A stretch of DNA of 37,945 nucleotides from Octopus sinensis (taxonomy: Eukaryota): contig NW_021835898.1 of NCBI RefSeq assembly GCF_006345805.1, forward strand, positions 1-37,945, given 5' to 3'. The notes under the pieces were generated by a model. It saw nothing but the letters and a program-made list of their open reading frames with translations. It was not told the DNA's origin and searched no databases. The translations under genes and the position numbers were made by a program. Shown here piece by piece: positions 4,831 to 37,945 of the stretch (its first letter is position 1; the number at the start of each line of letters is the position of its first letter).

Positions 4831-4844
4831 ATGTATATATATGT

Positions 4845-4858
4845 GTATGTATATATGA

Positions 4859-4939
<81 letters not shown>

Positions 4940-4940
4940 C
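4845..4940. repeat. (TA)n/(TG)n compound microsatellite interrupting the Helitron helicase
   Basis: Dinucleotide runs are directly visible. Confidence 0.9.
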
Positions 4941-5438: not shown

Positions 5439-6274
5439 CTAGCAGAATTGCCCGGCGTTGCTCGGGGCTGAATTACTTGAAAGTACTGTTAATGATTGCA
5501 CTGAATGATGATGATTATTCAGGCAAATATTGATATAAGTTTACGCTGGGAGATAAGGACTTAACGATCAAACGTGTGCCATTGCATTGTTTTGGGGAAA
5601 CCAAATTTCTGATGAGCATTATAGGGGCACCAACTTTAAGTTTGAGAATGTGTGGTGGTAGTCCGGGGTGCTCAAAGGAATTGAGTACCTCTATTGGATA
5701 GTTGATGACGTCCTCTGGGTCAGGAGTTGTATCGATAGACTGATATACATAGACTTCCCCAGGAATGAGTTTTAGCATTTCATCATTAATATGGTGAACA
5801 GTTTTATTCCTCGGGGCCAGTATAGCCTTTTTGCCAATCCAATCCATATTCTGATAATTAGCTTGTAGATCTTGGAACACTGCATCAGAAGGCGTCTTAA
5901 CAATGTTACAAATGGAATCGATGGCAATATTACCATTTTCATCCCCTGGTATTTTGCCTTCGCCAAGTGCAATGAGGGTGTGAGGAAATGCTGCTGATGT
6001 GATATTACGTCGCATATGAGCACGCATATTGGTGTGAAGTTTGAGAGTTACTTCCCTTAATTTAAAAAAATGCATTAAAATGGGAAAAAATGATGGTAAA
6101 TTATTTGTAAAATCATAGACTCATCGTAGATGCGCGCTAATACCCAGAAGGGCTCGATATGAATCACAACTATAAGATACTCGGTTTTGGTTAAACTGCA
6201 TCGCAAAATGTGGGAGTAGTTAGGAATCTAAATCGGAGTAGACAGACACACAACCTTTCTTTTATATATAAAGA
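5439..6274 (-). mobile_element. Non-autonomous Helitron (836 bp) carrying a helicase segment
   Basis: The minus-strand 5' end is A|TCTTTATATATAAAAG (6274). The 3' end is a CCCGAGCAACGCCGGG hairpin plus CAATTCTG-CTAG|T (5439), inserted at an AT target. ORF 5515-6075 encodes KAILAPRN..V..IND..LKLIPG..Y.SIDT...YPIEVLNS..PGLPPHILKLKVGAPIMLIRNL...CNGTRL, the Pif1/Helitron helicase C-terminal part. Confidence 0.92.
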
Positions 6275-8549: not shown

Positions 8550-8663
8550 TAATATAATATATTTATACTATAAAAGTGGATTTAATCCTAAATCTGATTT
8601 TTCCACGTAAGTTTGGATTTATTCCCTAATATTTTATTATATATATATATATTATATATATAT

Positions 8664-9714
8664 ATCATCATCCTCATCATCATCATCATCATCGTCATTT
8701 AGCCTCCGCTCTCCATGCTAGCATGGGTCGGACGGTTCAACTGGGGTCTGGGAAGCCATAAGGTTGCATCAGGCCCAGTCTGATCTGGCAGAGTTTCAAC
8801 GGCTTTATGCCCTTCCTAACGCCAACCACTCCGTGAGTGTAGTGGCTGCTTTTTACGTGCCAAGCAAACAGGTGCCAGATGGGGCCGGCAAAATGGCCTC
8901 AGAGAGATGGTGCTTTTTACGTGCCACCTGTACGGGGACCAGGCGAGGCTGGCAACGGCCACGATCGGACAGTGATTTTTGCATGCCACTTGCACGGGGG
9001 CCATGCGAGGCTGGCAATGGACATGAACAGATGGTGCTTTTTACATGCCATCGGCACGGGGGCCATGCGAGGCTGGCTATGGCCACGATCAGATGGTGCA
9101 TTTTACGTGCCACCGGAGGCCAGTCGGGGTAGCGCTGGCAACGGCCATGATTGGATGGTTCGCTTACTTGTCACCGGCACTGGTATCACAGCTGCAATTT
9201 CCATTGATGTTGATCGACTTCGATTTTGGTTCTGCTTTCTGATATCTGATATGATTTGATTTGATTTTGATTTTGATTTTGATTTTTGATTTTCACTTGC
9301 CTCAACGGGTCTTCACAAGAGGAGTTTTGTGTCCCTAGAAGGAAAAAAAGTATGTATAAGTCGACTGGCTACATACCGGTAGAGGCCACGGGTTATAGTC
9401 TCACTAGTCTTGCCTGGTCTTCTCACACACAGCATACTTTAATAGGTCTCGGTCTCTAGTGATTTCCTTGGTGAGACCTAAAGTTCGAAGGTCGTGCCTC
9501 ACCAACTCATCCCAGGTTTCCCTGGGTCTACCTCTTCCACAGGTTCCCTCAACCACTAGGGTGTGGGACTTTTGCACACAACTATCTTCAGCCATTCTCG
9601 TCACATGACCATACCAGCGCAAACGTCTATCTTGCACACCACAACTGATGCTTCTTAGGTCCAACTTTTCTCTCAAGGTACTTACACTCTGTCAAGTAAG
9701 AACACTGACATTAC
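8664..9714 (-). mobile_element. 5'-truncated RTE-clade LINE: ORF C-terminus, 3' UTR with internal ~65-67 bp tandem units, (GAT)n tail
   Basis: ORF 9404-9676 reads RRLRWYGHVTRM...GTCGRGRPRETW, the RTE C-terminus. The UTR carries 4-5 diverged units of GATGGTGCTTTTTACGTGCCAC at about 8845-9155. (CAT)n is at 8664-8697. Confidence 0.9.
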
Positions 9715-9720
9715 ATATAC

Positions 9721-9764
<44 letters not shown>

Positions 9765-9920
9765 TATATATATATTTATATATATACATACACACACACA
9801 CACACACATATATATAGATATATGTATATGTATATGTATATGTATATCTATATGTATATGTATATGTATGTATGTATATATATCTATATGATATAAATAG
9901 ATAAAAATATATACACATAC
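9715..9920. repeat. Compound (TA)n/(CA)n/(TATG)n microsatellite
   Basis: Directly visible. Confidence 0.9.
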
Positions 9921-9924
9921 AAAT

Positions 9925-10785
9925 ATCATCATCATCATTTCAATTCTGTTTTCCATGCTGACATGGTTGAACAATTTGAGAGGAACGAACCAGTAGAAGG
10001 GCTGCCCAAGCACCATATCTGTTTTGGCAGGGTTTCTATTGTTGGATGCCCTTCCTAACCCCAACCACTTTACAGAGTGTACTGGCTGCTTTTATACAGC
10101 ATTGACAGGGGTACATTCATCTGACACCAGTACGGGTATTTGTTACATGACACCAGCACCCACAAGATTAGGAATGAAGGGGACAAGACTGTATGCAGGG
10201 ACAACAATGCTTTTACTTGGCACATCTTCTCAAGCACAGCAAACCACCCGGAGTCTTGGTCCCTTGCCATCCCCTCTGTGAGTCCCAACATCTGTAGATC
10301 CTTTCTCACCCCTCTGTCCAACGTCTTCCTGGGTCTATCCCTTCCACATGCTCCTTCTATAATTAGACATCAGCACATCTTGGTGCAACGGTCTTCATCC
10401 ATACACATTACATGCTCACACCAGCGCAGTCTTCTCTCTCTTGTACGCTAACCCTGGTGCCTCATACACCCATTCTTTCTCTCAAACCACCACTTACACC
10501 CTGTCATATATGCACACTGACATTACCCATCCATCGAAGCATACTTGCTTCACTTCTTTGAAGCCTTTGCAGATCCTCAGTAGTCACAGTCCAGCTCTCA
10601 CTGCCACGTAGCAGAGCTGTTTGTACGCAGGCATCATACAGTCTGTCTTTCACTCTGACGGAATGGCCCTTCGTTACAAACAGTGGTGGTAACTCTCTGA
10701 ACTCCACCCAGCCTATTCTTATTCTAGAAGCTGTGCATTCAGAATCACCTCCCACTACTAGTAAATTGGTCACCTAATCAACGGA
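9925..10785 (-). mobile_element. 5'-truncated RTE-clade LINE of a second subfamily with (GAT)n tail
   Basis: ORF 10504-10773 reads RIRIGWVEFRELPPL...RLYDACVQTALLRGSESW...RLQRSEASMLRWM. ORF 10070-10321 reads VRKDLQMLGLTEGMARD...W.AVLEK. The terminus GGATGCCCTTCCTAACCCCAACCACT is shared with the other copies, and (CAT)n is at 9925. Confidence 0.88.
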
Positions 10786-11249
10786 AGCACCAAGAATTTT
10801 GTCCATCAGCCTGTATACATGACCTGTGTGGGGCAGCAAGGACTTAAGTAACCATCACCTACATAAGGGTTCCAATTGTGGTTTCTCATTATACACATCT
10901 TCATCTAGTTTGTGCTATCCTATCCATCCTCTTGATGGCTTTCTTCAGTTGTTGGGGTCCCACCCTTATCTTCTGCAGGATATAACACACTGATGTAGTT
11001 GGAAAGCCATAGCAGCCAATTTCAACGGGAAACGAGGCCATGTACCATCCCTTTACAAGGGCCTAGTGGACTAATCCTCATATTTTGTTGTCTTTAGCAG
11101 GTATTGCTATGAGATTAGTCAAGGCCTGGACCGATTCTGTCTGAAACTTGTCTCAGTAATCTAAGTAAATACACAGGATAAGGAAATGGGGAAAGAGGTT
11201 ATTCTGCAATGTCTAACTCTGTAGAAGACTCCCCCATTGACTCATACGT

Positions 11250-20095: not shown

Positions 20096-20158
20096 AAACT
20101 TAGGTATACACACACAGACAAAGATAAATTGATAGATACAACTGAGTGGGCAAGCAAA

Positions 20159-20918
20159 ATCATCATCATTATCATCATTTCATGTCCTCTTTCCATGCTA
20201 GCATGGGTTGGATGATTTGACTGAGGGCTGGTGAACCAGATGGCTGCACCAGGCTCCAATCTTCATCTGGCAGAGTTTCTACAGCTGGATGCCCTTCCTA
20301 ACGACAACCACTCCGAGTGTGTAGTGTGTGCTTTTACATGCCAATCGGCATGGGGGCCAGTCAGGCGGTACTGGTAACGACCTTGCACAAATCATTTTAC
20401 ACATGCCAATGGCACAGGTGCCAGTAAGGCGATGCTGTTGACGATCACGCTCGAATGGTGCCTTTTACATGCCACTGGCATGGAAGCCGGTTAGCTGCTC
20501 TGTCAACGATCACACTCGGATGGTGCTCTTTCCACCTCGGTAGCACGGATGCCTGACATCGAATTTGATTTTGATTTCACAAGCAGAGTTTAGTGACCAA
20601 AGAAGGAAAAGTTACGCATAAGTGGGCTGGTTACGCCCCTGGCATAGGCCACGAGGTTATGGTCTCATTTGGCTTGCCGGGTCTTAACAAGCACAGCATA
20701 TTTCCAAAAGTCTTGGTCACTAGTCATTGCCTCGGTGACGCCTAAAGTTTGAAGGTCGTCCTTCACCACTTTATCCCAGGTCATCTTGGGTCTACCTCTT
20801 CCACAGATTCACTCAACTGCTAGGGTGTGGCACTTTTTCACACAGCTATCCTCATCCATTCTCACCACATGACCATACCAGCGCAGACGTCTCTCTTGCA
20901 CACCACATCTGATGCTTC
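20159..20918 (-). mobile_element. 5'-truncated RTE-clade LINE, same family as 8664-9714
   Basis: It has the (CAT)n tail, the shared terminus and about 4 diverged UTR units (20325-20530). The ORF end is homologous to 9404-9650 (CATGACCATACCAGCGCAGACGTCTCTCTTGCACACCACA, encoding RRLRWYGHV on the minus strand). Confidence 0.88.
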
Positions 20919-21294
20919 TATATATATATATATATATATATATACACGTTTCAGGGGAACATGAATTACTATCATTGCTAGAAAGAGCTGCAGGTAAGCT
21001 TTCGTCGCTCTGCAGAGCTTCACTGAATGTTTACAGGTAGAAATGCGTGTGGATGGTGAATACAGAAAAATTTTACCTTATGGAGATCGTTAGAGGAATA
21101 AAGGATGACTCATTAGTGCAGCTTTAAACTCTAATTATTCACTTCAGTTATTATTTTGAGGATGTGGTTTTATTTCCCAGAAAATAATTACTACCTCATA
21201 TTATATTTTGTATTTATTTAGATATTTTTTTGCTCTTTTATTCTTTTAATTGACTCAGTCATCAGACTACGGCCGTGCTGGGGTAATGAGGTAT

Positions 21295-22242
21295 AATAGG
21301 TTGGGAAACTGTCCTCTGCATTTTTCACATGACCTGCATTTTTCACATGACCTCATTTTTCACATGACCTCATTTTTCACATGACCTCCATTTTTCACAT
21401 GACCACGGTTCTTTTCAATATTTGAAATAAATATTTCTTTTACATTCTAATATTTTTATTTGCGGATTACTTTAAACCTTAAACGTTAAATTTGTATCGA
21501 TTTTAATCTTTTAAAATGAGTTTAGATCAGACTTCGTTTATTAGACACTTCATGTTGTACGAACAGAAAAGGGGTCCCTTAGCAATGGAAGCAGCAAGAA
21601 ATATTTGTTGTTCAGTCCATGGAAACAATGCTGTCAGTTGCCTGGACATTCCAGCTATGGTTTGACCAGTTTCGCCCAGGAAAGATTTCTCCTAAAGATT
21701 TCCCTTGATCTAGCTGATCGAATTCTATCAATATCGAACTCAGCCGAGCAAAATTCAAAGCAAACCTCAAAAGATTAAGCAAGGCAGTTCAACTTTAGTC
21801 CTAGTTCGATCATAAAACACCTTCATGAACTGGGAAAAGTGTTTGAATTCAGAGTGTGGGTCCCTCATCACGTGACTGTTTCTCAGCTTCATCATAGACT
21901 TGCTACCCTCTGCTTGTCATTGAAGAGTAGACTTGTTATCAAAACTTTCTTTGGTAGAATCATCGCAACTGTTGAAAAGCGGGTCCTCTGTCATCATTTC
22001 CAACAAGAACGACAAGGCATAGCATCCGATAAATATAGACAATCCATTCCCAAGGTGGTGTCTCGGACTAAAAAAGAGTTGTGCTTTGTGTTTGATGGAA
22101 TGTTGAAGGTATTTTCTATCATGAAGGGGTCGACAATTGCCAAAACAGATGAGATTATTTTATCAATAATGGGAAGAAATATTTTATTGATTAAATGTAT
22201 CAATTAAGAATAAAGAAGTATTTGTGTGTTTCCCATCTTGAA
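21295..22242 (+). mobile_element. Decayed mariner-family DNA transposon with internal deletion
   Basis: From ATG 21516, hand translation gives IRHFMLYE..G..A.EAARNIC...G.NAVS...WF.QFR.G, then KHLHELGKVFEFRVWVPHHV (the WVPHEL motif) and FFGRIIATVEKR (expected RIVTGDEKW). Eroded TIR candidates are AGGTTGGGAAAC (about 21299) and GTTTCCCATCTT (about 22229). Confidence 0.8.
21316..21404. repeat. Five-copy 17-18 bp minisatellite CATTTTTCACATGACC
   Basis: Directly visible. Confidence 0.92.
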
Positions 22243-22609: not shown

Positions 22610-22795
22610 ATATATATGTGTGTATATATATGTATATATATGTGTGTATATATGTGTGTATATATATGTGTATATATATGTATATATATGTGTGTATATA
22701 TGTGTGTATATATATGTGTATATAAATGTATATATATATATGTATATGTATATATATATATGAATATATATATATATATGTGTGTGTGTGTGTAT
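22270..22795. repeat. Long compound (TA)/(TG)/(TATG) low-complexity tract
   Basis: Directly visible. It produces the Y/I/H/T-only ORFs. Confidence 0.92.
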
Positions 22796-22883
22796 CATCA
22801 TCATTGTTTAATGTCCACTTTCTATACCAGCCGTAGAAAGCAAACATTAAACGATAGTGTATATATATATATACATACTTATA

Positions 22884-24468
22884 CAGTGGCGGCCAAAATG
22901 TTCAGAACGGCATTGTTTTCATCAGAAAAGTAAGTATAATTTCTTATCAAAGTTGTTTTATCTTCTATCATTTTCACAGACAATAAATACGACATTATTT
23001 GTTATCGTCTGAGATTTTGGTGTAATTTGAGAGGATAATACAAAAGTTATGGATGATTTAGTGATTTACTGCAAAACCCATGGCAGCCAAAATGATCAGA
23101 ACGGTTGCTTTTACTCCGTATTTTAGTATATTTAACCGGCGAACTCTAATGTTTTGAATTTGTTTACGTGACGGTTCGTTTACTAAACATTAGTAAGAAT
23201 ATCTGCAGTGCACTTTGTTAATATAATGCCACTTACTCCGTTACTAATTCGTCAGCAGATTAAGCTTCGAAGGAAGGATAATTTAAGTATTGGGTCTATT
23301 GCGAAGATTGTTAACAAGTCAAAAAGTGTTGTTCACGGTATTCTTGTGAAGCAAGAAAGTCTACAGGTAGGCCAAGAAAAACGACCAAGAGAGAAGATCG
23401 TGCTATGGTAAAGTTGGTTAAAAAGGACAGATTTAAAACTGCTGCTGCTGTTTCTCGGAAAATGAGCATTGTATTGAAGAAAACTTTATCTCGAAAAACT
23501 GTGTCTCGTTGTTTAGTTGAACATGACCTACAAGCAAGAGCACCTGCAGTGAAGCCATTGATCAGCTCCAAGAATAAAAGTGTCGACTTACCTTTGCAAC
23601 CGAACATGTGTTGTGGTCTCAAGAAAAATGGCAAACGGTGCATTTCCGTGATGAATCTAAGTTTATGTTATTTGGCTCAGATGGGAAAAGGTACGTTCGT
23701 AGAAAAGTAGGTGAAAAATTGTCGCCTAAATGCCTTAAGACTAGTGTTAAATTCGGTGGAGGAAATGTCATGGTTTGGGGGATGATATCTGGAGATGGTG
23801 TGGGCCCTTTGGTGCGATTACATGGAAAGGTAAATGCAGGAGTTTATAAACAACTTGTAAAAGATCATGTCTTGCCTGTGCTAAGAAATTCAATTAAGCG
23901 ACCACCCATATTCATGCAGGACAATGCCCCATGTCACAAGGTTAAGGTGGTCATGAACTTCCTCAAGGCTGAAAAGGTTATTGTTATGGATTGGCCTGCT
24001 CAAAGCCCAGATCTCAATTCTATTAAAAATGTGTGGAATATTCTAGGAGAACGTTAGAATGCCAGAAATCCTAAAATAACCGAGCAATTATGGAATGCCC
24101 TTCGGGAAGAATGGAATAAGATCACCCAGCAAGAAATTGAACATTTAATTTCCCCATGCAGTCGAAGATGTCAGAGTGTGATTGAAGCTAAATATTAAAT
24201 AATTCCAGTATTCTCTGTCATTTTTGATTATTTTGTTATTTTTTCTACCGTTCTGATCATTTTGGCCGCCATGGGTTTTGCAGTAAATCACTAAATCATC
24301 CATAACTTTTGTATTATCCTCTCAAATTACTCCAACATCTCAGACAATAACAATTAATATTGTATGTATTGTCTGTGAAAATTATAGAATATAAAACAAC
24401 TTTGACAAAAACTTACACTTACTTTTCTGACGAAAACAATGCTGTTCTGGACATTTTGGCCGCAACTG
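22884..24468 (+). mobile_element. Full-length Tc1-family (DD34E) transposon of IR-DR type, 1585 bp, TA target duplication, inactive
   Basis: The ends are TA|CAGTGGCGGCCAAAATG and CATTTTGGCCGCAACTG|TA. The ~221-bp ITRs (22884-23104 and 24248-24468) each carry the direct repeat GGC[G/A]GCCAAAATG[T/A]TCAGAACGG at both ends. Confidence 0.95.
23226..24198 (+). pseudogene. Tc1 transposase pseudogene
   Basis: Motifs are an HTH (IGSIAKIVNKSKSVVHGIL), GRPRKTT in a shifted frame, FRDESKF, VKFGGGNVMVWG and FMQDNAPCH...DWPAQSPDLNSIKN. There are 34 residues between the second D and the expected E, which is K here. It has two frameshifts and a premature TAG at 24055-24057. Confidence 0.93.
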
Positions 24469-24569
24469 TATATATGTGTGTGTATATATATATATATCGG
24501 GTTGCTCTCTGCACCAGTTCCACATAGCCCCTGCCCATTCAAAGGACCTTGGATTCCAGAACACCCCGC

Positions 24570-24661
24570 AGTGCTTGATGAGACCTGTTGAGTCAAGTAC
24601 ATGAACATGAACATCGAAATGGATCTGGCAGTGGTGATGCCTGCACCGGGGCACATAGAAA
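24570..24661 (+). mobile_element. RTE 3'-UTR proximal segment leading into the satellite
   Basis: CTTGATGAGACCTGTTGAGTCAAGT...AACATCGAAATGGATCTGGCAGTGGTGATGCC aligns with the reverse complement of 9160-9320 (CTTGTGAAGACCCGTTGAGGCAAGT...AACATCAATGGAAATTGCAGCTGTGATACC). Confidence 0.75.
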
Positions 24662-27600
24662 GCACCATCCGAACGTGGCCGATGCCAGCGCCGCCTTAGC
24701 TGGCTTCTGTGCCAGTGGCACATAGAAAGCACCATCCGAACGTGGCCGATGCCAGCGCCGCCTTAGCTGGCTTCTGTGCCGGTAGCACATAAAAAGCACC
24801 ATCCGAACGTGGCCGATGCCAGCGCCGCCTTAGCTGGCTTCCGTGCCGGTGGCACATAGAAAGCACCATCCGAACGTGGCCGATGCCAGCGCCGCCTTAG
24901 CTGGCTTCCGTGCCGGTGGCACATAGAAAGCACCATCCGAACGTGGCCGATGCCAGCGCCGCCTTAGCTGGCTTCTGTGCCGGTGGCACATAGAAAGCAC
25001 CATCCGAACGTGGCCGATGCCAGCGCCGCCTTAGCTGGCTTCCGTGCCGGTGGCACATAAAAAGCACCATCCGAACGTGACCGATGCCAGCGCCGCCTTA
25101 GCTGGCTTCTGTGCCGGTAGCACATAAAAAGCACCATCCGAACGTGACCGATGCCAGCGCCGCCTTAGCTGGCTTCCGTGCCGGTGGCACATAAAATGCA
25201 CCATCCGAACGTGACCGATGCCAGCGCCGCCTTAGCTGGCTTCTGTGCCGGTAGCACATAAAAAGCACCATCCGAACGTGGCCGATGCCAGCGCCGCCTT
25301 AGCTGGCTTCCGTGCCGGTGGCACATAAAAGCACCATCCGAACGTGGCCGATGCCAGCGCCGCCTTAGCTGGCTTCTGTGCCGGTGGCACATAGAAAACA
25401 CCATCCGAACGTGGCCGATGCCAGCGCCGCCTTAGCTGGCTTCTGTGCCGGTGGCACATAGAAAGCACCATCCGAACGTGGCCGATGCCAGCGCCGCCTT
25501 AGCTGGCTTCTGTGCCGGTGGCACATAGAAAGCACCATCCGAACGTGGCCGATGCCAGCGCCGCCTTAGCTGGCTTCCGTGCCGGTGGCACATAGAAAGC
25601 ACCATCCGAACGTGGCCGATGCCAGCGCCGCCTTAGCTGGCTTCTGTGCCGGTGGCACATAGAAAGCACCATCCGAACGTGGCCGATGCCAGCGCCGCCT
25701 TAGCTGGCTTCTGTGCCGGTGGCACATAGAAAGCACCATCCGAACGTGGCCGATGCCAGCGCCGCCTTAGCTGGCTTCTGTGCCGGTGGCACATAGAAAG
25801 CACCATCCGAACGTGGCCGATGCCAGCGCCGCCTTAGCTGGCTTCTGTGCCGGTGGCACATAGAAAGCACCATCCGAACGTGGCCGATGCCAGCGCCGCC
25901 TTAGCTGGCTTCTGTGCCGGTGGCACATAGAAAGCACCATCCGAACGTGGCCGATGCCAGATCCCCCCCCCCCGGCACCTGTGCAAGTGGCACATAGAAA
26001 GCACCATCCGAACGTGGCCGATGCCAGCGCCGCCTTAGCTGGCTTCTGTGCCGGTGGCACATAGAAAGCACTATCCGAACGTGGCCGATGCCAGCGCCGC
26101 CTTAGCTGGCTTCTGTGCCGGTGGCACATAAAAAGCACCATCCGAACGTGGCCGATGCCAGCGCCGCCTTAGCTGGCTTCTGTGCCGGTGGCACATAGAA
26201 AGCACCATCCGAACGTGGCCGATGCCAACGCCGCCTTAGCTGGCTTCTGTGCCGGTGGCACATAGAAAGCACCATCCGAACGTGGCCGATGCCAGCGCCG
26301 CCTTAGCTGGCTTCTGTGCCGGAGGCACATAGAAAGCACCATCCGAACGTGGCCGATGCCAGATCCCCCCCCCCGGCACCTGTGCAAGTGGCACATAGAA
26401 AGCACCATCCGAACATGGGCGATGCCAGCGCCGCCTTAGCTGGCTTCTGTGCCGGTGGCACATAAAAAGCACCATCCGAACGTGGCCGATGCCAGCGCCG
26501 CCTTAGCTGGCTTCTGTGCCGGTGGCACATAGAAAGCACCATCCGAAAGTGGCCGATGCCAGCGCCGCCTTAGCTGGCTTCTGTGTCGGTGGCACATAGA
26601 AAGCACCATCCGAACGTGGCCGATGCCAGCGCCGCCTTAGCTGGCTTCTGTGCCGGTGGCACATAGAAAGCACCATCCGAACGTGGCCGATGCCAGCGCC
26701 GCCTTAGCTGGCTTCTGTGCCGGTGGCACATAGAAAGCACCATCCGAACGTGGCCGATGCCAGCGCCGCCTTAGCTGGCTTCTGTGCCGGTGGCACATAG
26801 AAAGCACCATCCGAACGTGGCCGATGCCAGCGCCGCCTTAGCTGGCTTCTGTGCCGGTGGCACATAGAAAGCACCATCCGAACGTGGCCGATGCCAGCGC
26901 CGCCTTAGCTGGCTTCTGTGCCGGTGGCACATAGAAAGCACCATCCGAACGTGGCCGATGCCAGCCCCGCCTTAGCTGGCTTCCGTGCCGGTGGCACATA
27001 GAAAGCACCATCCGAACGTGGCCGATGCCAGCGCCGCCTTAGCTGGCTTCTGTGCGGGTGGAACATAGAAAGCACCATCCGAACGTGGCCGATGCCAGCG
27101 CCGCCTTAGCTGGCTTCCGTGCCGGTGGGACATAGAAAGCACCATCCGAACGTGGCCGATGCCAGCGCCGCCTTAGCTGGCTTCTGTGCCGGTGGCACAT
27201 AGAAAGCACCATCCGAACGTGGCGATGCCAGCGCCGCCTTAGCTGGCTTCGTGCCGGTGGCACATAGAAAGCACCATCCGAACGTGGCCGATGCCAGCGC
27301 CGCCTTAGGTGGCTTCTGTGCCGGTGGCACATAGAAAGCACCATCCAACGTGGCCGATGCCAGCGCCGCCTTAGCTGGCTTCCGTGCCGGTGGCACATAG
27401 AAAGCACCATCCGAACGTGGCCGATGCCAGCTCCGCCTTAGCTGGCTTCTGTGCCGGTGGCACATAGAAAGCACCATCCGAACGTGGCCGATGCCAGCGC
27501 CGCCTTAGCTGGCTTCCGTGCCGGTGGCACATAGAAAGCACCATCCGAACGTGGCCGATGCCAGCGCCACCTTAGCTGGCTTCTGTGCCGGTGGCACATA

Positions 27601-30600
27601 GAAAGCACCATCCGAACGTGGCCGATGCCAGCGCCGCCTTAGCTGGCTTCCGTGCCGGTGGCACATAGAAAGCACCATCCGAACGTGGCCGATGCCAGCG
27701 CGCCGCCTTAGCTGGCTTCCGTGCCGGTGGCACATAGAAAGCACCATCCGAACGTGGCCGATGCCAGCGCCGCCTTAGCTGGCTTCCGTGCCGGTGGCAC
27801 ATAGAAAGCACCATCCGAACGTGGCGATGCCAGCGCCGCCTTAGCTGGCTTCCGTGCCGGTGGCACATAGAAAGCACCATCCGAACGTGGCCGATGCCCG
27901 CGCCGCCTTAGCTGGCTTCCGTGCCGGTGGCACATAGAAAGCAGCATCCGAACGTGGCCGATACCAGCGCCGCCTTAGCTGGCTTCGTGCCGGTGCACAT
28001 AGAAAGCACCATCCAACGTGCCGATGCCAGCGCCGCCTTAGCTGGCTCTGTGCCGGTGGCACATAGAAAGCACCATCCGAACGTGGCCGATGCCAGCGCC
28101 GCCTTAGCTGGCTTCCGTGCCGGTGGCACATAGAAGCACCATCCGAACGTGGCCGATGCCAGCGCCGCTCTTAGCTGGCTTCTGTGCCGTGGCACATAGA
28201 AAGCACCATCCGAACGTGGCCAATGCAGTGCCGCCTTCGCTGGCTTCCGTGCCGGTGGCACATAGAAAGCACCATCCGAACGTGGCCGATGCCAGCAGTC
28301 TTAGCTGGCTTCTGTGCCGGTGGCACATAGAAAGCACCATCCGAACGTGGCCGATGCCAGCGCCGCCTTAGCTGGCTTCCGTGCCGGTGGCACATAGAAA
28401 GCACCATCCGAACGTGGCCGATGCCAGCGCCGCCTTAGCTGGCTTCTGTGCCGGTGGCACATAGAAAGCACCATCCGAACGTGGCCGATTCCAGCGCCGC
28501 CTTAGCTGGCTTCCGTGCCGGTGGCACATAGAAGCACCATCCGAACGTGGCCGATGCCAGCGCCGCCTTAGCTGGCTTCTGTGCCGGTGGCACATAGAAA
28601 GCACCATCCGAACGTGGCCGATGCCAGCGCCGCCTTAGCTGGCTTCCGTGCCGGTGGCACATAGAAAGCACCATCCGAACGTGGCCGATGCCAGCGCGCC
28701 TTAGCTGGCTTGTGCCGGTGGCCACATAGAAAGCACCATCCGAACGTGGCCGATGCCAGCGCCGCCTTAGCTGGCTTCTGTGCCGGTGGCACATAGAAAG
28801 CACCATCCGAACATGGCCGATGCCAGCGCCGCCTTATCTGGCTTCTGTGCCGGTGGCACATAGAAAGCAACATCCGACGTGGCCGATGCCAGCGCCGCCT
28901 TAGCTGGCTTCTGTGCCGGTGGCACATAGAAAGCACCATCCGAACGTGGCCGATGCCAGATCCCCCCCCCGGCACCTGTGCAAGTGGCATATAGAAAGCA
29001 CCATCCGAACGTGCCGATGCCAGCGCCGCCTTAGCTGGCTTCTGTGCCGGTGGCACACAGAAAGCACCATCCGAACGTGGCCGATGCCAGCACCGCCTTA
29101 GCTGCTTCTGTGCCGGAGGCACATAGAAAGCACCATCCGACCGTGGCCGATGCCAGATCCCCCCCCCCGGCACCTGTGCAAGTGGCACATAGAAAGCACC
29201 ATCCGAACGTGGCCGATGCCAGCGCCGCCTTAGCTGGCTTCTGTGCCGGTGGCACATAAAAGCACCATCCGAACGTGGCCGATGCCAGCGCCGCCTTAGC
29301 TGGCTTCTGTGCCGGTGCACATAGAAACCATCCACGAACGTGGCCGATGCCAGCGCCGCCTTAGCTGGCTTCTGTGCCGGTGGCACATAGAAAGCACCAT
29401 CCGAACGTGGCCGATGCCAGCGCCGCCTTAGCTGGCTTCTGTGCCGGTGGCACATAGAAAGCACCATCCGAACGTGGCCGATGCCAGCGCCGCCTTAGCT
29501 GGCTTCTGTGCCGGTGGCACATAGAAAGCACCATCCGAACGTGGCCGATGCCAGCGCCGCCTTAGCTGGCTTCTGTGCCGGGGCACATAGAAAGCACCAT
29601 CCGAACGTGGCCGATGCCAGCGCCGCCTGAGCTGGCTTCTGTGCCGGTGGCACATAGAAAGCACCATCCGACGTGGCCGATGCCACGCCGCCTTAGCTGG
29701 CTTCTGTGCCGGTGGCACATAGAAAGTACCATCCGAACGTGGCCGATGCCAGCCCCGCCTTAGCTGGCTTCCGTGCCGGTGGCACATAGAAAGCACCATC
29801 CGAACGTGGCCGATGCCAGCGCCGCCTTAGCTGGCTTCTGTGCCGGTGGCACATAGAAAGCACCATCCGAACGTGGCCGATGCCAGCGCCGCCTTAGCTG
29901 GCTTCCGTGCCGGTGGCACATAGAAAGCACCATCCGAACGTGGCCGATGCCAGCGCCGCCTTAGCTGGCTTCTGTGCCGGTGGCACATAGAAAGCACCAT
30001 CCGAACGTGGCCGATGCCAGCGCCGCCTTAGCTGGCTTCCGTGCCGGTGGCACATAGAAAGCACCATCCGAACGTGGCCGATGCCAGCGCCGCCTTAGCT
30101 GGCTTCTGTGCCGGTGGCACATAGAAAGCACCATCCGAACGTGGCCGATGCCAGCGCCGCCTTCGCTGGCTTCCGTGCCGGTGGCACATAGAAAGCACCA
30201 TCCGAACGTGGCCGATGCCAGCGCCGCCTTAGCTGGCTTCTGTGCCGGTGGCACATAGAAAGCACCATCCGAACGTGGCCGATGCCAGCGCCGCCTTAGC
30301 TGGCTTCCGTGCCGGTGGCACATAGAAGGCACCATCCGAACGGCCGATGCCAGCGCCGCCTTAGTGGCTTCTGTGCCGGTGGCACATGAGAAAGCACCAT
30401 CCGAACGTGGCCGATGCCAGCGCGCCTTAGCTGGCTCCGTGGTGGCACATAGAAAGCACCATCCGAACGTGGCCGATGCCAGCGCCGCCTTAGCTGGCTT
30501 CCGTGCCGGTGGCAATAGAAAGCACCATCCGAACGTGGCCGATGCCAGCGCCGCCTTAGCTGGCTTCCGTGCCGGTGGCACATAGAAAGCACCATGCGAA

Positions 30601-33600
30601 CATGGCCGATGTCAGCGCCGCCTTAGCTGGCTTCTGTGCCGGTGGCACATAGAAAGCACCATCCGAACGTGGCCGATGCCAGCGCCGCCTTAGCTGGCTT
30701 CCGTGCCGGTGGCACATAGAAAGCACCATCCGAACGTGGCCGATGCCAGCGCCGCCTTAGCTGGCTTCTGTGCCGGTGGCACATAGAAAGCACCATCCGA
30801 ACGTGGCCGATGCCAGCGCCGCCATAGCTGGCTTCCGTGCCGGTGGCACATAGAAAGCACCATCCGAACGTGGCCGATGCCAGCGCCGCCTTAGCTGGCT
30901 TCTGTGCCGGTGGCACATAGAAAGCACCATCCGAACGTGGCCGATGCCAGCGCCGCCTTAGCTGGCTTCCGTGCCGGTGGCACATAGAAAGCACCATCCG
31001 AACGTGGCCGATGCCAGCGCCGCCTTAGCTGGCTTCTGTGCGGTGGCACATAGAAAGCACCATCCGAACGTGGCCGATGGCAGATTCCCCCCCCCCGGCA
31101 CCTGTGCAAGTGGCACATAGAAAGCACCATCCGAACGTGGCCGATGCCAGCGCCGCCTTAGCTGGCTTCTGTGCCGGTGGCACATAAAAGCACCATCCGA
31201 ACGTGGCCGATGCCAGCGCCGCCTTAGCTGGCTTCTGTGCCGGTGGCACATAGAAAGCACCATCCGAACGTGGCCGATGCCAGCGCCGCCTTAGCTGGCT
31301 TCTGTGCCGGTGGCACATAGAAAGCACCATCCGAACGTGGCCGATGCCAGATCCCCCCCCCGGCACCTGTGCAGTGGCACATAGAAAGCACCATCCGAAC
31401 GTGGCCGATGCCAGCGCCGCCTTAGCTGGCTTCTGTGCCGGTGGCACATAAAAAGCACCATCCGAACGTGGCCGATGCCAGCGCCGCCTTAGCTGGCTTC
31501 TGTGCCGGTGGCACATAGAAAGCACCATCCGAACGTGGCCGATGCCAGAGCCCCCCCCGGCACCTGTGCAAGTGGCACATAGAAAGCACCATCCGAACGT
31601 GGCCGATGCCAGCGCCGCCTTAGCTGGCTTCTGTGCCGGTGGCACATAAAAAGCACCATCCGAACGTGGCCGATGCCAGCGCCGCCTTAGCTGGCTTCTG
31701 TGCCGGTGGCACATAGAAAGCACCATCCGAACGTGGCCGATGCCAGCGCCGCCTTAGCTGGCTTCTGTGCCGGTGGCACATAGAAAGCACCATCCGAACG
31801 TGGCCGATGCCAGCGCCGCCTTAGCTGGCTTCTGTGCCGGTGGCACATAGAAAGCACCATCCGAACGTGGCCGATGCCAGCGCCGCCTTAGCTGGCTTCT
31901 GTGCGGTGGCACATAGAAAGCACCATCCGAACGTGGCCGATGCCAGCGCCGCCTTAGCTGGCTTCTGTGCCGTGGCACATAGAAAGCACCATCCGAACGT
32001 GGCCGATGCCAGCGCCGCCTTAGCTGGCTTCTGTGCCGGTGGCACATAGAAAGCACCATCCGAACGTGGCCGATGCCAGCGCCGCCTTAGCTGGCTTCTG
32101 TGCCGGTGGCACATAGAAAGCACCATCCGAACGTGGCCGATGCCAGCGCCGCCTTAGCTGGCTTCTGTGCCGGTGGCACATAGAAAGCACCATCCGAACG
32201 TGGCCGATGCCAGATCCCCCCCCCGGCACCTGTGCAAGTGGCATATAGAAAGCACCATCCGAACGTGGCCGATGCCAGCGCCGCCTTAGCTGGCTTCTGT
32301 GCCGGTGGCACATAGAAAGCACCATCCGAACGTGGCCGATGCCAGCGCCGCCTTAGCTGGCTTCTGTGCCGGAGGCACATAGAAAGCACCATCCGAACGT
32401 GGCCGATGCCAGATCCCCCCCCCGGCACCTGTGCAAGTGGCACATAGAAAGCACCATCCGAACGTGGCCGATGCCAGCGCCGCCTTAGCTGGCTTCTGTG
32501 CCGGTGGCACATAAAAAGCACCATCCGAACGTGGCCGATGCCAGCGCCGCCTTAGCTGGCTTCTGTGCCGGTGGCACATAGAAAGCACCATCCGAACGTG
32601 GCCGATGCCAGCGCCGCCTTAGCTGGCTTCTGTGCCGGTGGCACATAGAAAGCACCATCCGAACGTGGCCGATGCCAGCGCCGCCTTAGCTGGCTTCTGT
32701 GCCGGTGGCACATAGAAAGCACCATCCGAACGTGGCCGATGCCAGCGCCGCCTTAGCTGGCTTCTGTGCCGGTGGCACATAGAAAGCACCATCCGAACGT
32801 GGCCGATGCCAGCGCCGCCTTAGCTGGCTTCTGTGCCGGTGGCACATAGAAAGCACCATCCGAACGTGGCCGATGCCAGCGCCGCCTTAGCTGGCTTCCG
32901 TGCCGGTGGCACATAGAAAGCACCATCCGAACGTGGCCGATGCCAGCTCCGCCTTAGCTGGCTTCTGTGCCGGTGGCACATAGAAAGCACCATCCGAACG
33001 TGGCCGATGCCAGCGCCGCCTTAGCTGGCTTCCGTGCCGGTGGCACATAGAAAGCACCATCCGAACGTGGCCGATGCCAGCGCCGCCTTAGCTGGCTTCT
33101 GTGCCGGTGGCACATAGAAAGCACCATCCGAACGTGGCCGATGCCAGCGCCGCCTTAGCTGGCTTCCGTGCCGGTGGCACATAGAAAGCACCATCCGAAC
33201 GTGGCCGATGCCAGCGCCGCCTTAGGTGGCTTCTGTGCCGGTGGCACATAGAAAGCACCATCCGAACGTGGCCGATGCCAGCGCCGCCTTAGCTGGCTTC
33301 CGTGCCGGTGGCACATAGAAAGCACCATCCGAACGTGGCCGATGCCAGCGCCGCCTTAGCTGGCTTCTGTGCCGGTGGCACATAGAAAGCACCATCCGAA
33401 CGTGGCCGATGCCAGCGCCGCCTTAGCTGGCTTCCGTGCCGGTGGCACATAGAAAGCACCATCCGAACGTGGCCGATGCCAGCGCCGCCTTAGCTGGCTT
33501 CCGTGCCGGTGGCACATAGAAAGCACCATGCGAACGTGGCCGATGTCAGCGCCGCCTTAGCTGGCTTCTGTGCCGGTGGCACATAGAAAGCACCATCCGA

Positions 33601-36600
33601 ACGTGGCCGATGCCAGCGCCGCCTTAGCTGGCTTCCGTGCCGGTGGCACATAGAAAGCACCATCCGAACGTGGCCGATGCCAGCGCCGCCTTAGCTGGCT
33701 TCTGTGCCGGTGGCACATAGAAAGCACCATCCGAACGTGGCCGATGCCAGCGCCGCCTTAGCTGGCTTCCGTGCCGGTGGCACATAGAAAGCACCATCCG
33801 AACGTGGCCGATGCCAGCGCCGCCTTAGCTGGCTTCTGTGCCGGTGGCACATAGAAAGCACCATCCGAACGTGGCCGATGCCAGATTCCCCCCCCCGGCA
33901 CCTGTGCAAGTGGCACATAGAAAGCACCATCCGAACGTGGCCGATGCCAGCGCCGCCTTAGCTGGCTTCTGTGCCGGTGGCACATAAAAAGCACCATCCG
34001 AACGTGGCCGATGCCAGCGCCGCCTTAGCTGGCTTCTGTGCCGGTGGCACATAGAAAGCACCATCCGAACGTGGCCGATGCCAGCGCCGCCTTAGCTGGC
34101 TTCTGTGCCGGTGGCACATAGAAAGCACCATCCGAACGTGGCCGATGCCAGATCCCCCCCCGGCACCTGTGCAAGTGGCACATAGAAAGCACCATCCGAA
34201 CGTGGCCGATGCCAGCGCCGCCTTAGCTGGCTTCTGTGCCGGTGGCACATAAAAAGCACCATCCGAACGTGGCCGATGCCAGCGCTGCCTTAGCTGGCTT
34301 CTGTGCCGGTGGCACATAGAAAGCACCATCCGAACGTGGCCGATGCCAGCGCCGCCTTAGCTGGCTTCTGTGCCGGTGGCACATAGAAAGCACCATCCGA
34401 ACGTGGCCGATGCCAGCGCCGCCTTAGCTGGCTTCTGTGCCGGTGGCACATAGAAAGCACCATCCGAACGTGGCCGATGCCAGCGCCGCCTTAGCTGGCT
34501 TCTGTGCCGGTGGCACATAGAAAGCACCATCCGAACGTGGCCGATGCCAGCGCCGCCTTAGCTGGCTTCTGTGCCGGTGGCACATAGAAAGCACCATCCG
34601 AACGTGGCCGATGCCAGCGCCGCCTTAGCTGGCTTCTGTGCCGGTGGCACATAGAAAGCACCATCCGAACGTGGCCGATGCCAGCGCCGCCTTAGCTGGC
34701 TTCTGTGCCGGTGGCACATAGAAAGCACCATCCGAACGTGGCCGATGCCAGCGCCGCCTTAGCTGGCTTCTGTGCCGGTGGCACATAGAAAGCACCATCC
34801 GAACGTGGCCGATGCCAGCGCCGCCTTAGCTGGCTTCTGTGCCGGTGGCACATAGAAAGCACCATCCGAACGTGGCCGATGCCAGCGCCGCCTTAGCTGG
34901 CTTCTGTGCCGGTGGCACATAGAAAGCACCATCCGAACGTGGCCGATGCCAGCGCCGCCTTAGCTGGCTTCTCTGCCGGTGGCACATAGAAAGCACCATC
35001 CGAACGTGACCGATGCCAGCGCCGCCTTAGCTGGCTTCTGTGCCGGTGGCACATAGAAAGCACCATCCGAACGTGGCCGATGCCAGCGCCGCCTTAGCTG
35101 GCTTCTGTGCCGGTGGCACATAGAAAGCACCATCCGAACGTGGCCGATGCCAGCGCCGCCTTAGCTGGCTTCTGTGCCGGTGGCACATAGAAAGCACCAT
35201 CCGAACGTGGCCGATGCCAGCGCCGCCTTAGCTGGCTTCTGTGCCGGTGGCACATAGAAAGCACCATCCGAACGTGGCCGATGCCAGCGCCGCCTTAGCT
35301 GGCTTCTGTGCCGGTGGCACATAAAAAGCACCATCCGAACGTGACCGATGCCAGCTCCGCCTTAGCTGGCTTCTGTGCCGGGGCACATAGAAAGCACCAT
35401 CCGAACGTGACCGATGCCAGCGCCGCCTTAGCTGGCTTCTGTGCCGGTGGCACATAGAAAGCACCATCCGAACGTGGCCGATGCCAGCGCCGCCTTAGCT
35501 GGCTTCTGTGCCGGTAGCACATAAAAAGCACCATCCGAACGTGACCGATGCCAGCACCGCCTTAGCTGGCTTCTGTGCCGGGGCACATAGAAAGCACCAT
35601 CCGAACGTGACCGATGCCAGCGCCGCCTTAGCTGGCTTCTGTGCCGGTGGCACATAGAAAGCACCATCCGAACGTGGCCGATGCCAGCGCCGCCTTAGCT
35701 GGCTTCTGTGCCGGTGGCACATAGAAAGCACCATCCGAACGTGGCCGATGCCAGCACCGCCTTAGCTGGCTTCTGTGCCGGTGGCACATAGAAAGCACCA
35801 TCCAAACGTGGCCGATGCCAGCGCCGCCTTAGCTGGCTTCTGTGCCGGTGGCACATAGAAAGCACCATCCGAACGTGGCCGATGCCAGCGCCGCCTTAGC
35901 TGGCTTCTGTGCCAGTGGCACATAAAAAGCACCATCCGAACGTGACCGATGCCAGCGCCGCCTTAGCTGGCTTCTGTGCCGGGGCACATAGAAAGCACCA
36001 TCCGAACGTGACCGATGCCAGCGCCGCCTTAGCTGGCTTCTGTGCCGGTGGCACATAGAAAGCACCATCCGAACGTGGCCGATGCCAGCGCCGCCTTAGC
36101 TGGCTTCCGTGCCGGTGGCACATAAAAAGCACCATCCGAACGTGGCCGATGCCAGCGCCGCCTTAGCTGGCTTCTGTGCCGGTGGCACATAGAAAGCACC
36201 ATCCGAACGTGGCCGATGCCAGCGCCGCCTTAGCTGGCTTCTGTGCCGGTGGCACATAGAAAGCACCATCCGAACGTGGCCGATGCCAGCGCCGCCTTAG
36301 CTGGCTTCTGTGCCGGTGGCACATAAAAAGCACCATCCGAACGTGACCGATGCCAGCGCCGCCTTAGCTGGCTTCTGTGCCGGGGCACATAGAAAGCACC
36401 ATCCGAACGTGACCGATGCCAGCGCCGCCTTAGCTGGCTTCTGTGCCGGTGGCACATAGAAAGCACCATCCGAACGTGGCCGATGCCAGCGCCGCCTTAG
36501 CTGGCTTCCGTGCCGGTGGCACATAAAAAGCACCATCCGAACGTGGCCGATGCCAGCGCCGCCTTAGCTGGCTTCTGTGCCGGTGGCACATAGAAAGCAC

Positions 36601-37945
36601 CATCCGAACGTGGCCGATGCCAGCGCCGCCTTAGCTGGCTTCTGTGCCGGTGGCACATAGAAAGCACCATCCGAACGTGGCCAATGCCAGCGCCGCCTTA
36701 GCTGGCTTCTGTGCCGGTGGCACATAAAAAGCACCATCCGAACGTGACCGATGCCAGCGCCGCCTTAGCTGGCTTCTGTGCCGGGGCACATAGAAAGCAC
36801 CATCCGAACGTGACCGATGCCAGCGCCGCCTTAGCTGGCTTCTGTGCCGGTGGCACATAGAAAGCACCATCCGAACGTGGCCGATGCCAGCGCCGCCTTA
36901 GCTGGCTTCTGTGCCGGTAGCACATAAAAAGCACCATCCGAACGTGACCGATGCCAGCGCCGCCTTAGATGGCTTCTGTGCCAGGGCACATAGAAAGCAC
37001 CATCCGAACGTGACCGATGCCAGCGCCGCCTTAGCTGGCTTCTGTGCCGGTGGCACATAGAAAGCACCATCCGAACGTGGCCGATGCCAGCGCCGCCTTA
37101 GCTGGCTTCTGTGCCGGTAGCACATAAAAAGCACCATCCGAACGTGACCGATGCCAGCGCCGCCTTAGCTAGCTTCTGTGCCGGGGCACATAGAAAGCAC
37201 CATCCGAACGTGACCGATGCCAGCGCCGCCTTAGCTGGCTTCTGTGCCGGTGGCACATAGAAAGCACCATCCAAACGTGGCCGATGCCAGCGCCGCCTTA
37301 GCTGGCTTCTGTGCCGGGGCACATAGAAAGCACCATCCGAACGTGACCGATGCCAGCCCCGCCTTAGCTGGCTTCTGTGCCGGTGGCACATAGAAAGCAC
37401 CATCCGAACGTGGCCGATGCCAGCGCCGCCTTAGCTGGCTTCTGTGCCGGGGCACATAAAAAGCACCATCCGAACGTGACCGATGCCAGCGCCGCCTTAG
37501 CTGGCTTCTGTGCCGGTGGCACATAGAAAGCACCATCCGAACGTGGCCGATGCCAGCGCCGCCTTAGCTGGCTTCTGTGCCGGTGGCACATAGAAAGCAC
37601 CATCCGAACGTGGCCGATGCCAGCGCCGCCTTAGCTGGCTTCTGTGCCGGTGGCACATAGAAAGCACCATACGAACGTGACCGATGCCAGCGCCGCCTTA
37701 GCTGGCTTCTGTGCCGGGGCACATAGAAAGCACCATCCGAACGTGGCCGATGCCAGCGCCGCCTTAGCTGGCTTCTGTGCCGGTGGCACATAGAAAGCAC
37801 CATCCGAACGTGGCCGATGCCAGCGCCGCCTTAGCTGGCTTCCGTGCCGGTGGCACATAGAAAGCACCATCCGAACGTGGCCGATGCCAGCGCCGCCTTA
37901 GCTGGCTTCCGTGCCGGTGGCACATAGAAAGCACCATGCGAACGT
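24662..37945 (+). repeat. 67-bp GC-rich satellite array, about 198 units, continuing past the window end
   Basis: The consensus is GCACCATCCGAACGTGGCCGATGCCAGCGCCGCCTTAGCTGGCTTCTGTGCCGGTGGCACATAGAAA (67 nt, 42 G+C, 6 CpG). Units are head-to-tail with no spacers. Eleven variant units carry ATC(C)nGGCACCTGTGCAA. Confidence 0.98.

Follow-up and report, generated by a model that had tools for sequence, protein, structure and literature searches.

How a tandem array of more than 13 kb could have come to begin inside the 3' untranslated region (UTR) of an RTE-like retrotransposon is the question raised by the right-hand part of the window, that is, the whole stretch of 37,945 nucleotides analysed here. 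Three adjoining features frame this question:

24498..24572, no strand assigned: flank of 75 bp that separates a (TA/TG)n microsatellite from the RTE fragment and lacks RTE similarity.
24573..24645, plus strand: non-repeated RTE 3'-UTR segment of 73 bp that precedes the first unit (the pre-unit), from BLAST to copy A (below), alignment and a shuffle test.
24646..37945, plus strand: tandem array of 199 monomers and a 32-bp partial monomer, from TRF, segmentation and identity statistics; the window end cuts the array.

TRF reported a single array at 24646-37945, with a period of 67, 199.5 copies, 95% matches and a score of 24138. Consensus-guided segmentation resolved it into 199 full monomers and the partial one, which runs to the final base of the window; because the window stops inside the array, the figure of at least 199 units is a lower bound. 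The 67-bp consensus is CCGGTGGCACATAGAAAGCACCATCCGAACGTGGCCGATGCCAGCGCCGCCTTAGCTGGCTTCTGTG. Monomers range from 63 to 69 bp (exactly 67 bp in 151 of 199), and their spacing never exceeds 69 bp, with no foreign insertions in the array. Identity to the consensus averages 97.4% (minimum 80%) across the 199 monomers, in close agreement with the preliminary description, which had counted about 198 nearly identical units. Between monomers, pairwise identity averages 94.7%; 64 of them equal the consensus, and the array holds 82 different monomer sequences in all. GC content is 62% in the array versus 40% in the flank. Old arrays usually have degraded edges. The left-most monomers of this array equal interior ones in homogeneity, which fits a young array and does not separate growth in situ from expansion at insertion.

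Related RTE-like copies lie to the left of the array, all on the minus strand:

8664..9715, minus strand: copy A, dispersed and 5'-truncated, from sequence, ORF, TRF period of 62, unit table and terminus motifs.
9404-9676, minus strand: C-terminus of the ORF of copy A, from the ORF.
9255-9293, minus strand: (TTTGAT)n microsatellite of copy A, from sequence.
8847-9177, minus strand: five UTR units and a truncated one in copy A, preceded by the pre-unit, from the unit table and the TRF period of 62.
8664-8698, minus strand: (GAT)n tail of copy A, after the terminus GGAAGGGCAT...CCCATGCTAGCATGG, from motifs.
20160..20919, minus strand: copy B, dispersed and 5'-truncated, of a more diverged subfamily, from sequence, BLAST, unit table and terminus motifs.
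About 20329-20543, minus strand: three UTR units and a truncated one in copy B, which also has the terminus and a GAT-rich tail.
9926..10788, minus strand: related RTE copy C, with a decayed ORF C-terminus, 1-2 degenerate units only, the terminus and a (GAT)n tail, from a 69% match to the ORF region of the independent copy L001 (below), sequence and motifs.

Six dispersed 3' ends were compared: copies A and B in the window, two on Octopus vulgaris chromosomes (OX597840 and OX597839) and two on ENA contigs. All six have a common architecture, consisting of the pre-unit, 3-5 units, a truncated unit, CCACTACACTC..GGAGTGGTTGGCGTTAGGAAGGGCATCC...CCCATGCTAGCATGG and (GAT)n. The units measure 59-67 bp, and the at least 199 units of the array exceed the 3-5 of each dispersed copy more than 40-fold. 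Four to five units per copy had at first been reported for the window, a figure that suits copy A with its five but not copy B with three, so that the range becomes 3-5. Truncation at the 5' end within the UTR is normal for the element, as copies L002 and L003 begin in the microsatellite or in the units.

The left edge of the array joins this architecture in register. BLAST aligned 24607-24691 with the minus strand of copy A at 9214-9132 (87 bp at 75%, E = 1e-7). One UTR block, shared by copy A and L001, an independent RTE 3' end, is matched by 24573-24598 (CTTGATGAGACCTGTTGAGTCAAGT), with local alignment scores of 30 for copy A and 33 for L001 versus 14-15 +/- 2 for shuffles. Shuffle tests of the pre-unit gave z = 7.4 for copy A, 8.6 for L001 and 4.7 for L002. 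Furthermore, the edge is collinear with RTE 3' UTRs, with the blocks CTTG.GA.GACCTGTTGAG.CAAGT and ATGAACATC.AATGGA... kept in order, and the first monomer begins exactly at the unit-1 start position of copy A, L001 and L002. BLAST, alignment and shuffle z-scores therefore agree with the initial proposal that the array starts in register from an RTE 3' UTR, and the RTE match, then placed from 24570, begins at about 24573. The segment 24573..24645 shows where the RTE copy that bears the array was truncated at its 5' end. To its left, 24498-24572 gave z <= 0 against the UTR segments of copies A, B, L001 and L002 and no BLAST match in the window or the compared loci, and BLAST detected neither the array nor its monomer to the left of 24573. 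That the array begins at the UTR's own repeat counts against an RTE copy having landed in an older satellite.

The monomer is likewise related to the UTR units. In BLAST, a trimer of the monomer matched the units of every dispersed copy, with 73% for copy B. The array monomer is 58-82% identical to the 24 UTR units of the six copies, the nearest being unit 1 of L002 (82%) and unit 1 of L001 (78%), and it lies inside the range of identity between units of different copies (54%-94%). A neighbour-joining tree groups it with the first-unit type (66-67 bp). The monomer had been described as the tandem unit of the UTR, and it is homologous to that unit, within unit diversity and adjoining the first-unit type. 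It had also been claimed that progenitor, junction and product are all present in the window; this stands for the junction and the array but not for the progenitor, since the window copies are 65-73% identical and, judged by sequence, are relatives of the progenitor and not the progenitor itself. Among the copies compared, no source subfamily (unit identity to the monomer of 95% or more) turned up, and the nearest unit is at 82%.

A C-terminal ORF motif, the trinucleotide tail and the match to the architecture of RTE-2_OV (PMC9115989) suggest that the progenitor was an octopus-type RTE-like LINE. The ORF stretch present comprises the last 90-260 residues only. The RTE C-terminus had no match in Pfam, and a protein search with the C-terminal ORF recovered one relative only, on an ENA contig (the independent copy L001), which is uninformative for clade. 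The ORF motif pattern, RLRWYGHV..GRGRPR.TW..DR, presumably resembles the BovB C-terminus and serves as a lead only. As in the RTE clade, a (GAT)n tail and not poly(A) is found in the six copies and in copy C, and 5' truncation is frequent, with 5' ends at varied points including inside the UTR. The very short 3' UTR of classical RTE elements is not seen. Copies A and L001 each have a UTR about 600 nt long, but this length is not disqualifying, because the 3' UTR of octopus RTE-2_OV is also about 600 nt (PMC9115989). The terminus and ORF motifs were absent from the supplements of the octopus RTE paper (PMC9115989).

Variants recur within the array, with T64C found in 43 monomers, G14A in 22 and G34A in 21, and shared variants are patchy, with 2-, 3-, 6- and 13-monomer periodicity. 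The poly-C monomer is a minor type (11 of 199); all 11 terminate in GGCACCTGTG, like internal UTR units, and their 3' half matches the internal type. This shared ending suggests that at least two UTR units contributed to the founding of the array. At seven sites the same pair recurs, in which a CAAG-variant monomer comes after a poly-C monomer. The within-array variation points to growth by duplication and not to random sequencing error. No regular higher-order repeat was found in the array, only local patches of 2, 3, 4, 6 and 13 monomers. The mean difference between monomers by lag is nearly flat across the array (3.1-3.8), and duplicated blocks did not reach significance by permutation (observed run 8, shuffled maximum 8). 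The longest exact informative run is four monomers, long exactly duplicated blocks are absent, and identical non-consensus monomers are weakly clustered (median distance 52 versus 59 monomers at random).

We consider it likely that this locus is a truncated RTE copy whose UTR minisatellite expanded at the site after insertion. A 5'-truncated RTE-like LINE copy, with little beyond its 3' UTR, would have inserted at the locus, its UTR carrying an ordinary minisatellite of 3-5 units of 59-67 bp. After insertion, the first (66-67-bp) unit type and a remnant of the internal type would have been amplified to at least 199 copies by repeated unequal exchange or replication slippage in the pre-existing tandem units, and local homogenisation would have come next. 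Read from the left junction only, growth was probably in place. The far end would still be the RTE terminus and (GAT)n tail, with the truncated unit CCGGTGGCACATA.AAAGCAC expected before CCACTACACTC.CGGAGTGGTTGGCGTTAGGAAGGGCATCCAGCTGTAGAAAC...CCCATGCTAGCATGGAAAGCGGACG...(GAT)n. We infer that the array itself is without function.

Expansion might instead have accompanied retrotransposition, either by slippage or template switching of reverse transcriptase among UTR units or from a source transcript that was already long, so that the locus was born long. Slippage during retrotransposition has been proposed for simple-sequence repeats at the 3' ends of Lepidoptera RTE elements (PMC2887409), and the equal homogeneity of edge and interior monomers agrees with such an origin, as does the unit number, which runs from 1-2 to 5 across RTE subfamilies and indicates that copy number shifts along the lineage. 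However, all six dispersed copies have 3-5 units, with no intermediate number, and a cDNA of more than 13 kb would be extreme for an element with a 3' UTR of about 600 nt (PMC9115989). The patchy periodicities and recurrent poly-C/CAAG pairs, moreover, resemble successive duplications at the DNA level, and we regard expansion during retrotransposition as unlikely.

It is extremely improbable that the direction was the reverse, with the RTE 3' UTR having acquired an older 67-bp satellite, or with a fragment of an RTE copy lying beside an unrelated look-alike satellite. One array edge is visible, and the monomer is at most 82% identical to any UTR unit found, which leaves some room for such a history; yet the units lie at the same place between pre-unit and terminus in diverged subfamilies (at least one further species, O. 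vulgaris, and the two ENA contigs) and a subfamily with 1-2 degenerate units exists, so that the element must have had these units for a long time. Furthermore, the array starts at the exact unit-1 position, and no satellite lies to the left of the RTE fragment. Finally, the array could be real and its length or internal order an assembly artefact, produced by over-extension or mis-joining of a shorter repeat. The 82 distinct monomers, the non-repeating order of variants and the lack of long exact duplicated blocks are unlike an assembler loop and make this very unlikely, although about 24% of monomers are not 67 bp long, mostly through 1-bp deletions in single-base runs and variable poly-C that are reminiscent of long-read errors.

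Conserved RNA or DNA structure in the units was rejected as evidence of function, given weak covariation and folding like that of shuffles. Two short inverted repeats are kept in 88-94% of cells with just three compensatory cells, RNAalifold retains one 4-bp helix only, and a dimer of the monomer shows no folding advantage over shuffles (z = -0.3). The exact monomer (core) was absent from JGI metagenome contigs, GTDB genome contigs and a protein collection, the DNA sets among these holding little or no cephalopod DNA, and the RTE-terminus pattern had no match in the JGI metagenome contigs, with the same scant cephalopod content. When an antisense ORF from the array served as a protein query, nothing near-identical was returned, only RTE-UTR-derived ORFs at 32-49% identity. 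UTR units and arrays are already translated as "hypothetical proteins" in the O. vulgaris annotation. Monomer strings of 15-17 nt from both strands had no match in the literature searched, and monomer strings and keywords together gave no description of the 67-bp family, consistent with the initial remark that no description of it was known. No paper on cephalopod satellite DNA was found by keyword in the literature searched.

Repeats in the 3' UTR of Ogre LTR retrotransposons have given rise to satellites, namely PisTR-A in pea and nine in Lathyrus sativus (PMC7004042; PMC9659126). As with Ogre and PisTR-A, a short tandem array is normal in the retrotransposon 3' UTR and is expanded here, while dispersed elements keep short arrays. 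Expanded Ogre arrays are flanked by element sequence; here such sequence is present at the left edge (24573-24645), and the window ends in the array. The Ogre cases are plant LTR elements (Ty3/gypsy) studied at many loci, with length distributions and pericentromeric location obtained from reads and FISH; the present case is a non-LTR element in a cephalopod-type genome, seen at one locus and one edge from sequence alone.

Other satellites come from LINEs. In the review PMC9659126, the common cetacean satellite is related to the L1 3' end, chicken HinfI/SCR1 corresponds to the CR1 3' UTR and partial ORF2, and Drosophila 18HT to the HeT-A 3' non-coding region (PMC9659126). The source of these monomers, as here, is the 3' part of a LINE, but in the review's account the monomers are stretches of the element, not described as an internal tandem unit amplified in register, and none of the three is RTE-type or molluscan (PMC9659126). 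Lepidoptera RTE 3' ends generate microsatellite families (PMC2887409), through often-retrotransposed 3' partial copies with tandem repeats for which slippage is invoked, and a post-ORF microsatellite and trinucleotide tail are found here as well. Their repeats are simple sequences with motifs of a few bases, and the 3' UTR that holds them is extremely short; the array here exceeds 13 kb, with a 67-bp unit from a UTR of about 600 nt. In octopus, RTE-2_OV and the O. bimaculoides RTE are described as RTE-clade LINEs in which a microsatellite follows directly on the ORF (PMC9115989). The layout of RTE-2_OV, likened by description only, is that of copies A and L001, with ORF end, microsatellite and remaining UTR; the RTE-2_OV paper makes no mention of 60-67-bp UTR units or of an expanded array (PMC9115989). 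In molluscs, satellite-like repeats are borne by transposable elements, including the Helentron-carried Cg170-type in Crassostrea gigas (PMC7492417) and pearl/BIV160. These belong to the same phylum and similarly tie tandem repeats within mobile elements to satellite arrays, but their carriers are DNA transposons (Helitron-like or MITEs) and not the 3' UTR of a LINE.

The word satellite is applied here to one locus, and the array is best called a candidate satellite-like array. It could be one locus of a major octopod chromosomal satellite, for example pericentromeric or subtelomeric, with the RTE UTR units acting throughout octopods as a standing 'library' for species-specific amplification of variants. 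This seems a quite doubtful prospect; if true, it would provide the first sequence-defined cephalopod satellite or centromere candidate, with its birth junction preserved. UTR units and arrays will confound repeat annotation. Satellites derived from transposable elements are well known, and the array is a clear, not surprising further example, at which three stages are directly comparable: dispersed copies with their short UTR minisatellite, the junction, and the array after expansion. The route by which 3'-UTR repeats of retrotransposons become satellites, documented best in the Ogre elements of plants, is thereby extended to an RTE-like non-LTR element in a cephalopod-type genome.

A single tandem array occupies 24646-37945 (Tandem Repeats Finder: period 67, 199.5 copies, 95% matches, score 24138), and the same program found no other long-period array of any size in the window. 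When the array was segmented monomer by monomer against its consensus, CCGGTGGCACATAGAAAGCACCATCCGAACGTGGCCGATGCCAGCGCCGCCTTAGCTGGCTTCTGTG, 199 full monomers were obtained, along with a 32-bp partial one that finishes at the window's final base; because the array is cut there, 13.3 kb is its minimum length. Monomer lengths range from 63 to 69 bp (exactly 67 bp in 151), no foreign insertion was found in any monomer, and identity averages 97.4% to the consensus and 94.7% between pairs, with 64 monomers identical to the consensus and 82 distinct sequences. The array differs from the remainder of the window in GC content (62% vs 40%) and in observed/expected CpG (0.93 vs 0.54). Both analyses thus bear out the long homogeneous array first noticed by eye.

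Three dispersed RTE-like LINE 3' ends lie elsewhere in the window.

RTE-like 3' ends in the window
8664-9715, minus strand: copy A, five units and a truncated one
20160-20919, minus strand: copy B, three units and a truncated one
9926-10788, minus strand: copy C, more decayed, only one or two degenerate units, same terminus and (GAT)n tail

As an older relative with one or two units, copy C indicates that unit number has changed along the RTE lineage. Copy A retains a 90-residue ORF end (...RLRWYGHVTRM...GRGRPRETW...DRDLL...), and the one relative that a protein search with it brought up, located on an ENA contig of 1.6 kb, proved to be a fourth, independent copy (L001) laid out as copy A is. 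When an antisense ORF of the array served as the query, the matches were two 'hypothetical predicted proteins' of Octopus vulgaris and a further ENA contig; the fetched loci are again RTE 3' ends, with 3.4 units in L002 (OX597840), 5.3 in L003 (OX597839) and ~3 in L004. The common layout consists of the ORF end, ~100 nt, an (AAATC)n or (TTTGAT)n microsatellite, a non-repeated pre-unit segment, 3-5 units of 59-67 bp, a truncated unit of ~20 nt, and CCACTACACTC.CGGAGTGGTTGGCGTTAGGAAGGGCATCC...CCCATGCTAGCATGGAAAGCGGACG followed by the (GAT)n tail. Only the C-terminal tail of the ORF is present, and it had no match in Pfam. DNA identity between the RTE-like ends and the O. vulgaris copies is 75-85%.

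The two O. vulgaris proteins (P0003, L002 10001-10414; P0004, L003 10001-10405) are antisense translations of the 3'-UTR units and are likely annotation artefacts. With only one stop codon per three monomers on its antisense strand, the array likewise yields spurious minus-strand ORFs, the longest of 299 aa. Microsatellites of (TA)n repeatedly adjoin RTE copies at the 5' truncation point, immediately beyond the (GAT)n tail, or in both places (window 8635-8665, 9715-9913 and 20919-20944; L001 1400-1411; both ends of the L002 copy), which hints that TA repeats are either a target of the element or a product of it. Two further RTE-type tails, at 2602-2619 on the plus strand (CCCATGCCAGCATGGAAA...(GAT)n) and 22793-22850 on the minus strand (...GTGGACATTAAACAATGATGATGATG), have no recognisable RTE UTR upstream and could represent SINEs, or else truncated copies of very short length, that share this tail.

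For comparison with the array consensus, 24 units were cut from six copies (A, B and L001-L004). Units differ between copies by 6-46%, and their mean identity to the array consensus is 73%, the closest being unit 1 of L002 (82%), unit 2 of L004 (80%) and unit 1 of L001 (78%). In a neighbour-joining tree the array falls within the diversity of units, not outside it, and clusters with a first-unit type (A_U1, L001_U1, L002_U1, L004_U2) that is 66-67 bp long with a longer GCCAG...CTGGC loop, compared with 61-64 bp for internal units; the 67-bp period fits the first-unit type. The proposed homology of monomer and UTR unit is therefore upheld, as is the contrast in copy number, at least 199 monomers against 3-5 units in the six dispersed copies. 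The preliminary description had also placed the progenitor in the window, but copies A and B reach no more than 65-73% identity with the monomer and are cousins of the progenitor rather than the progenitor itself. In a minor type (11 of the 199 monomers) the 3' half is replaced by ...GCCAGATCCCCCCCCCCGGCACCTGTG, and the monomer finishes, as internal units do, in GGCACCTGTG; this type is also slightly nearer to internal units than the major monomer is. These features point to seeding of the array by more than one UTR unit.

The left junction of the array is composed as follows.

Features at the left junction
22882-24470: Tc1/mariner element with TIRs of ~250 bp, a TA duplication, and HTH_Tnp_Tc3_2 and DDE_3 matches
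ending at 24497: (TA/TG)n run, between the Tc1/mariner element and a 75-bp flank
24498-24572: the 75-bp flank, without a match in local alignment to UTR segments or in BLAST of the window and fetched loci
from ~24573: RTE-like LINE 3'-UTR sequence preceding the array

Two conserved blocks, CTTGATGAGACCTGTTGAGTCAAGT (in L001, CTTGTGAAGACCTGTTGAGGCAAGT) and ATGAACATCGAAATGGATCTGGCAGTGGTGATGCCTGCA (in L001, ATGAACATCAATGGAATTTGTATCCTTGTGGTACCAGTG), occur in the RTE-derived flank in native 3'-UTR order, and in the alignment monomer 1 begins where unit 1 of the dispersed copies does. BLAST aligns 24607-24691 to 9214-9132 in copy A, and local alignment of 24570-24645 scores 30-33, against 14-15 +/- 2 for shuffled queries. 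These results confirm the left edge, with its start in register, that had been read from the sequence. The array-bearing element is, on this alignment, a 5'-truncated copy starting 73 bp upstream of its own first unit. Truncation within the UTR is nothing unusual in this element, as L002 begins inside the post-ORF microsatellite and L003 inside the units. The Tc1/mariner element, ~100 bp left of the RTE fragment, has unusually long TIRs (22860-23105 vs 24247-24496, 90% identical, flanked by TA duplications) and a frameshifted transposase (HTH_Tnp_Tc3_2 at 23405-23710, DDE_3 at 23608-24057).

Variation inside the array is dominated by a few common variants (T64C in 43 monomers, G14A in 22, G34A in 21, G3A in 14) that are shared in patches: two monomer types alternate strictly in places, e.g., monomers 123-136, a 6-monomer period spans monomers 161-188, a 13-monomer period occurs around monomers 100-116, and a poly-C monomer is directly followed by a CAAG-variant monomer in seven places. 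Such patchiness is characteristic of local duplication and unequal exchange acting repeatedly, and not of random sequencing error. No array-wide higher-order repeat was found, and a block-run permutation test for duplications within the array was not significant. Edge monomers match the consensus as closely as those of the interior, and there is no CpG depletion; both observations are compatible with a young array. In a search for a structural cause of instability or a function, predicted folding was no better than that of shuffles; each unit has two short inverted repeats that copies retain well, with minimal covariation, and these were not taken as evidence of function.

The UTR minisatellite probably expanded in place: a 5'-truncated RTE-like copy carrying it would have inserted at this locus, and expansion would have followed insertion. 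Expansion by template slippage during retrotransposition itself is unlikely, as no copies of intermediate length were seen. It is rather improbable that assembly has exaggerated the array's length, since the patchy shared variants are unlike an assembler loop and no long exactly duplicated blocks occur within the array. Very little credence is given to a satellite that arose first and was then captured by the RTE, as diverged subfamilies and a further species carry the units at an identical UTR position, and there is no satellite sequence beyond the RTE fragment on the side away from the array.

The window is transposon-dense throughout, and no host gene was recognised in it.

Other features of the window
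18022-20215: GC-rich block; long ORFs (331, 333 and 230 aa) overlap one another and lie on both strands
4022-6075 and 454-1003, minus strand: Helitron-type Pif1 helicase fragments (Pif1_2B_dom) and a separate LINE RVT_1 fragment
21319-21404: ~5 repeats of a 17-bp unit, CATTTTTCACATGACCT, 97% identity

The GC-rich block has an internal 54-bp x2.2 repeat, no Pfam match, and RTE copy B inserted at its right end; its stretch …DWPDPACVRDLRNFLGWCAYCRRLV… presumably resembles a decayed LTR-retrotransposon pol linker. The best matches of the Helitron Pif1 fragment are in O. sinensis and O. bimaculoides (51-56% identity); like the similarity of the RTE-like ends to O. vulgaris copies, they mark the host as octopod-like.

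Satellites born from tandem repeats within transposable elements are well documented, including PisTR-A of pea and nine Lathyrus satellites from the 3' UTR of Ogre LTR retrotransposons (PMC7004042; PMC9659126), the closest parallel to this array. LINE 3' regions have given rise to a cetacean satellite (L1), chicken HinfI (CR1) and 18HT (HeT-A) (PMC9659126), and RTE 3' ends spread simple-sequence repeats (PMC2887409). In light of the Ogre and LINE precedents, the array belongs to a known kind and is mechanistically unsurprising. Neither the 67-bp family nor a satellite from any cephalopod is described in the literature searched, and satellites go unmentioned in a recent repeat annotation of O. 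vulgaris (PMC13282606). The locus is a tidy example of a transposon-derived tandem array; it may be the first that involves an RTE-type UTR minisatellite, and the first from cephalopods.
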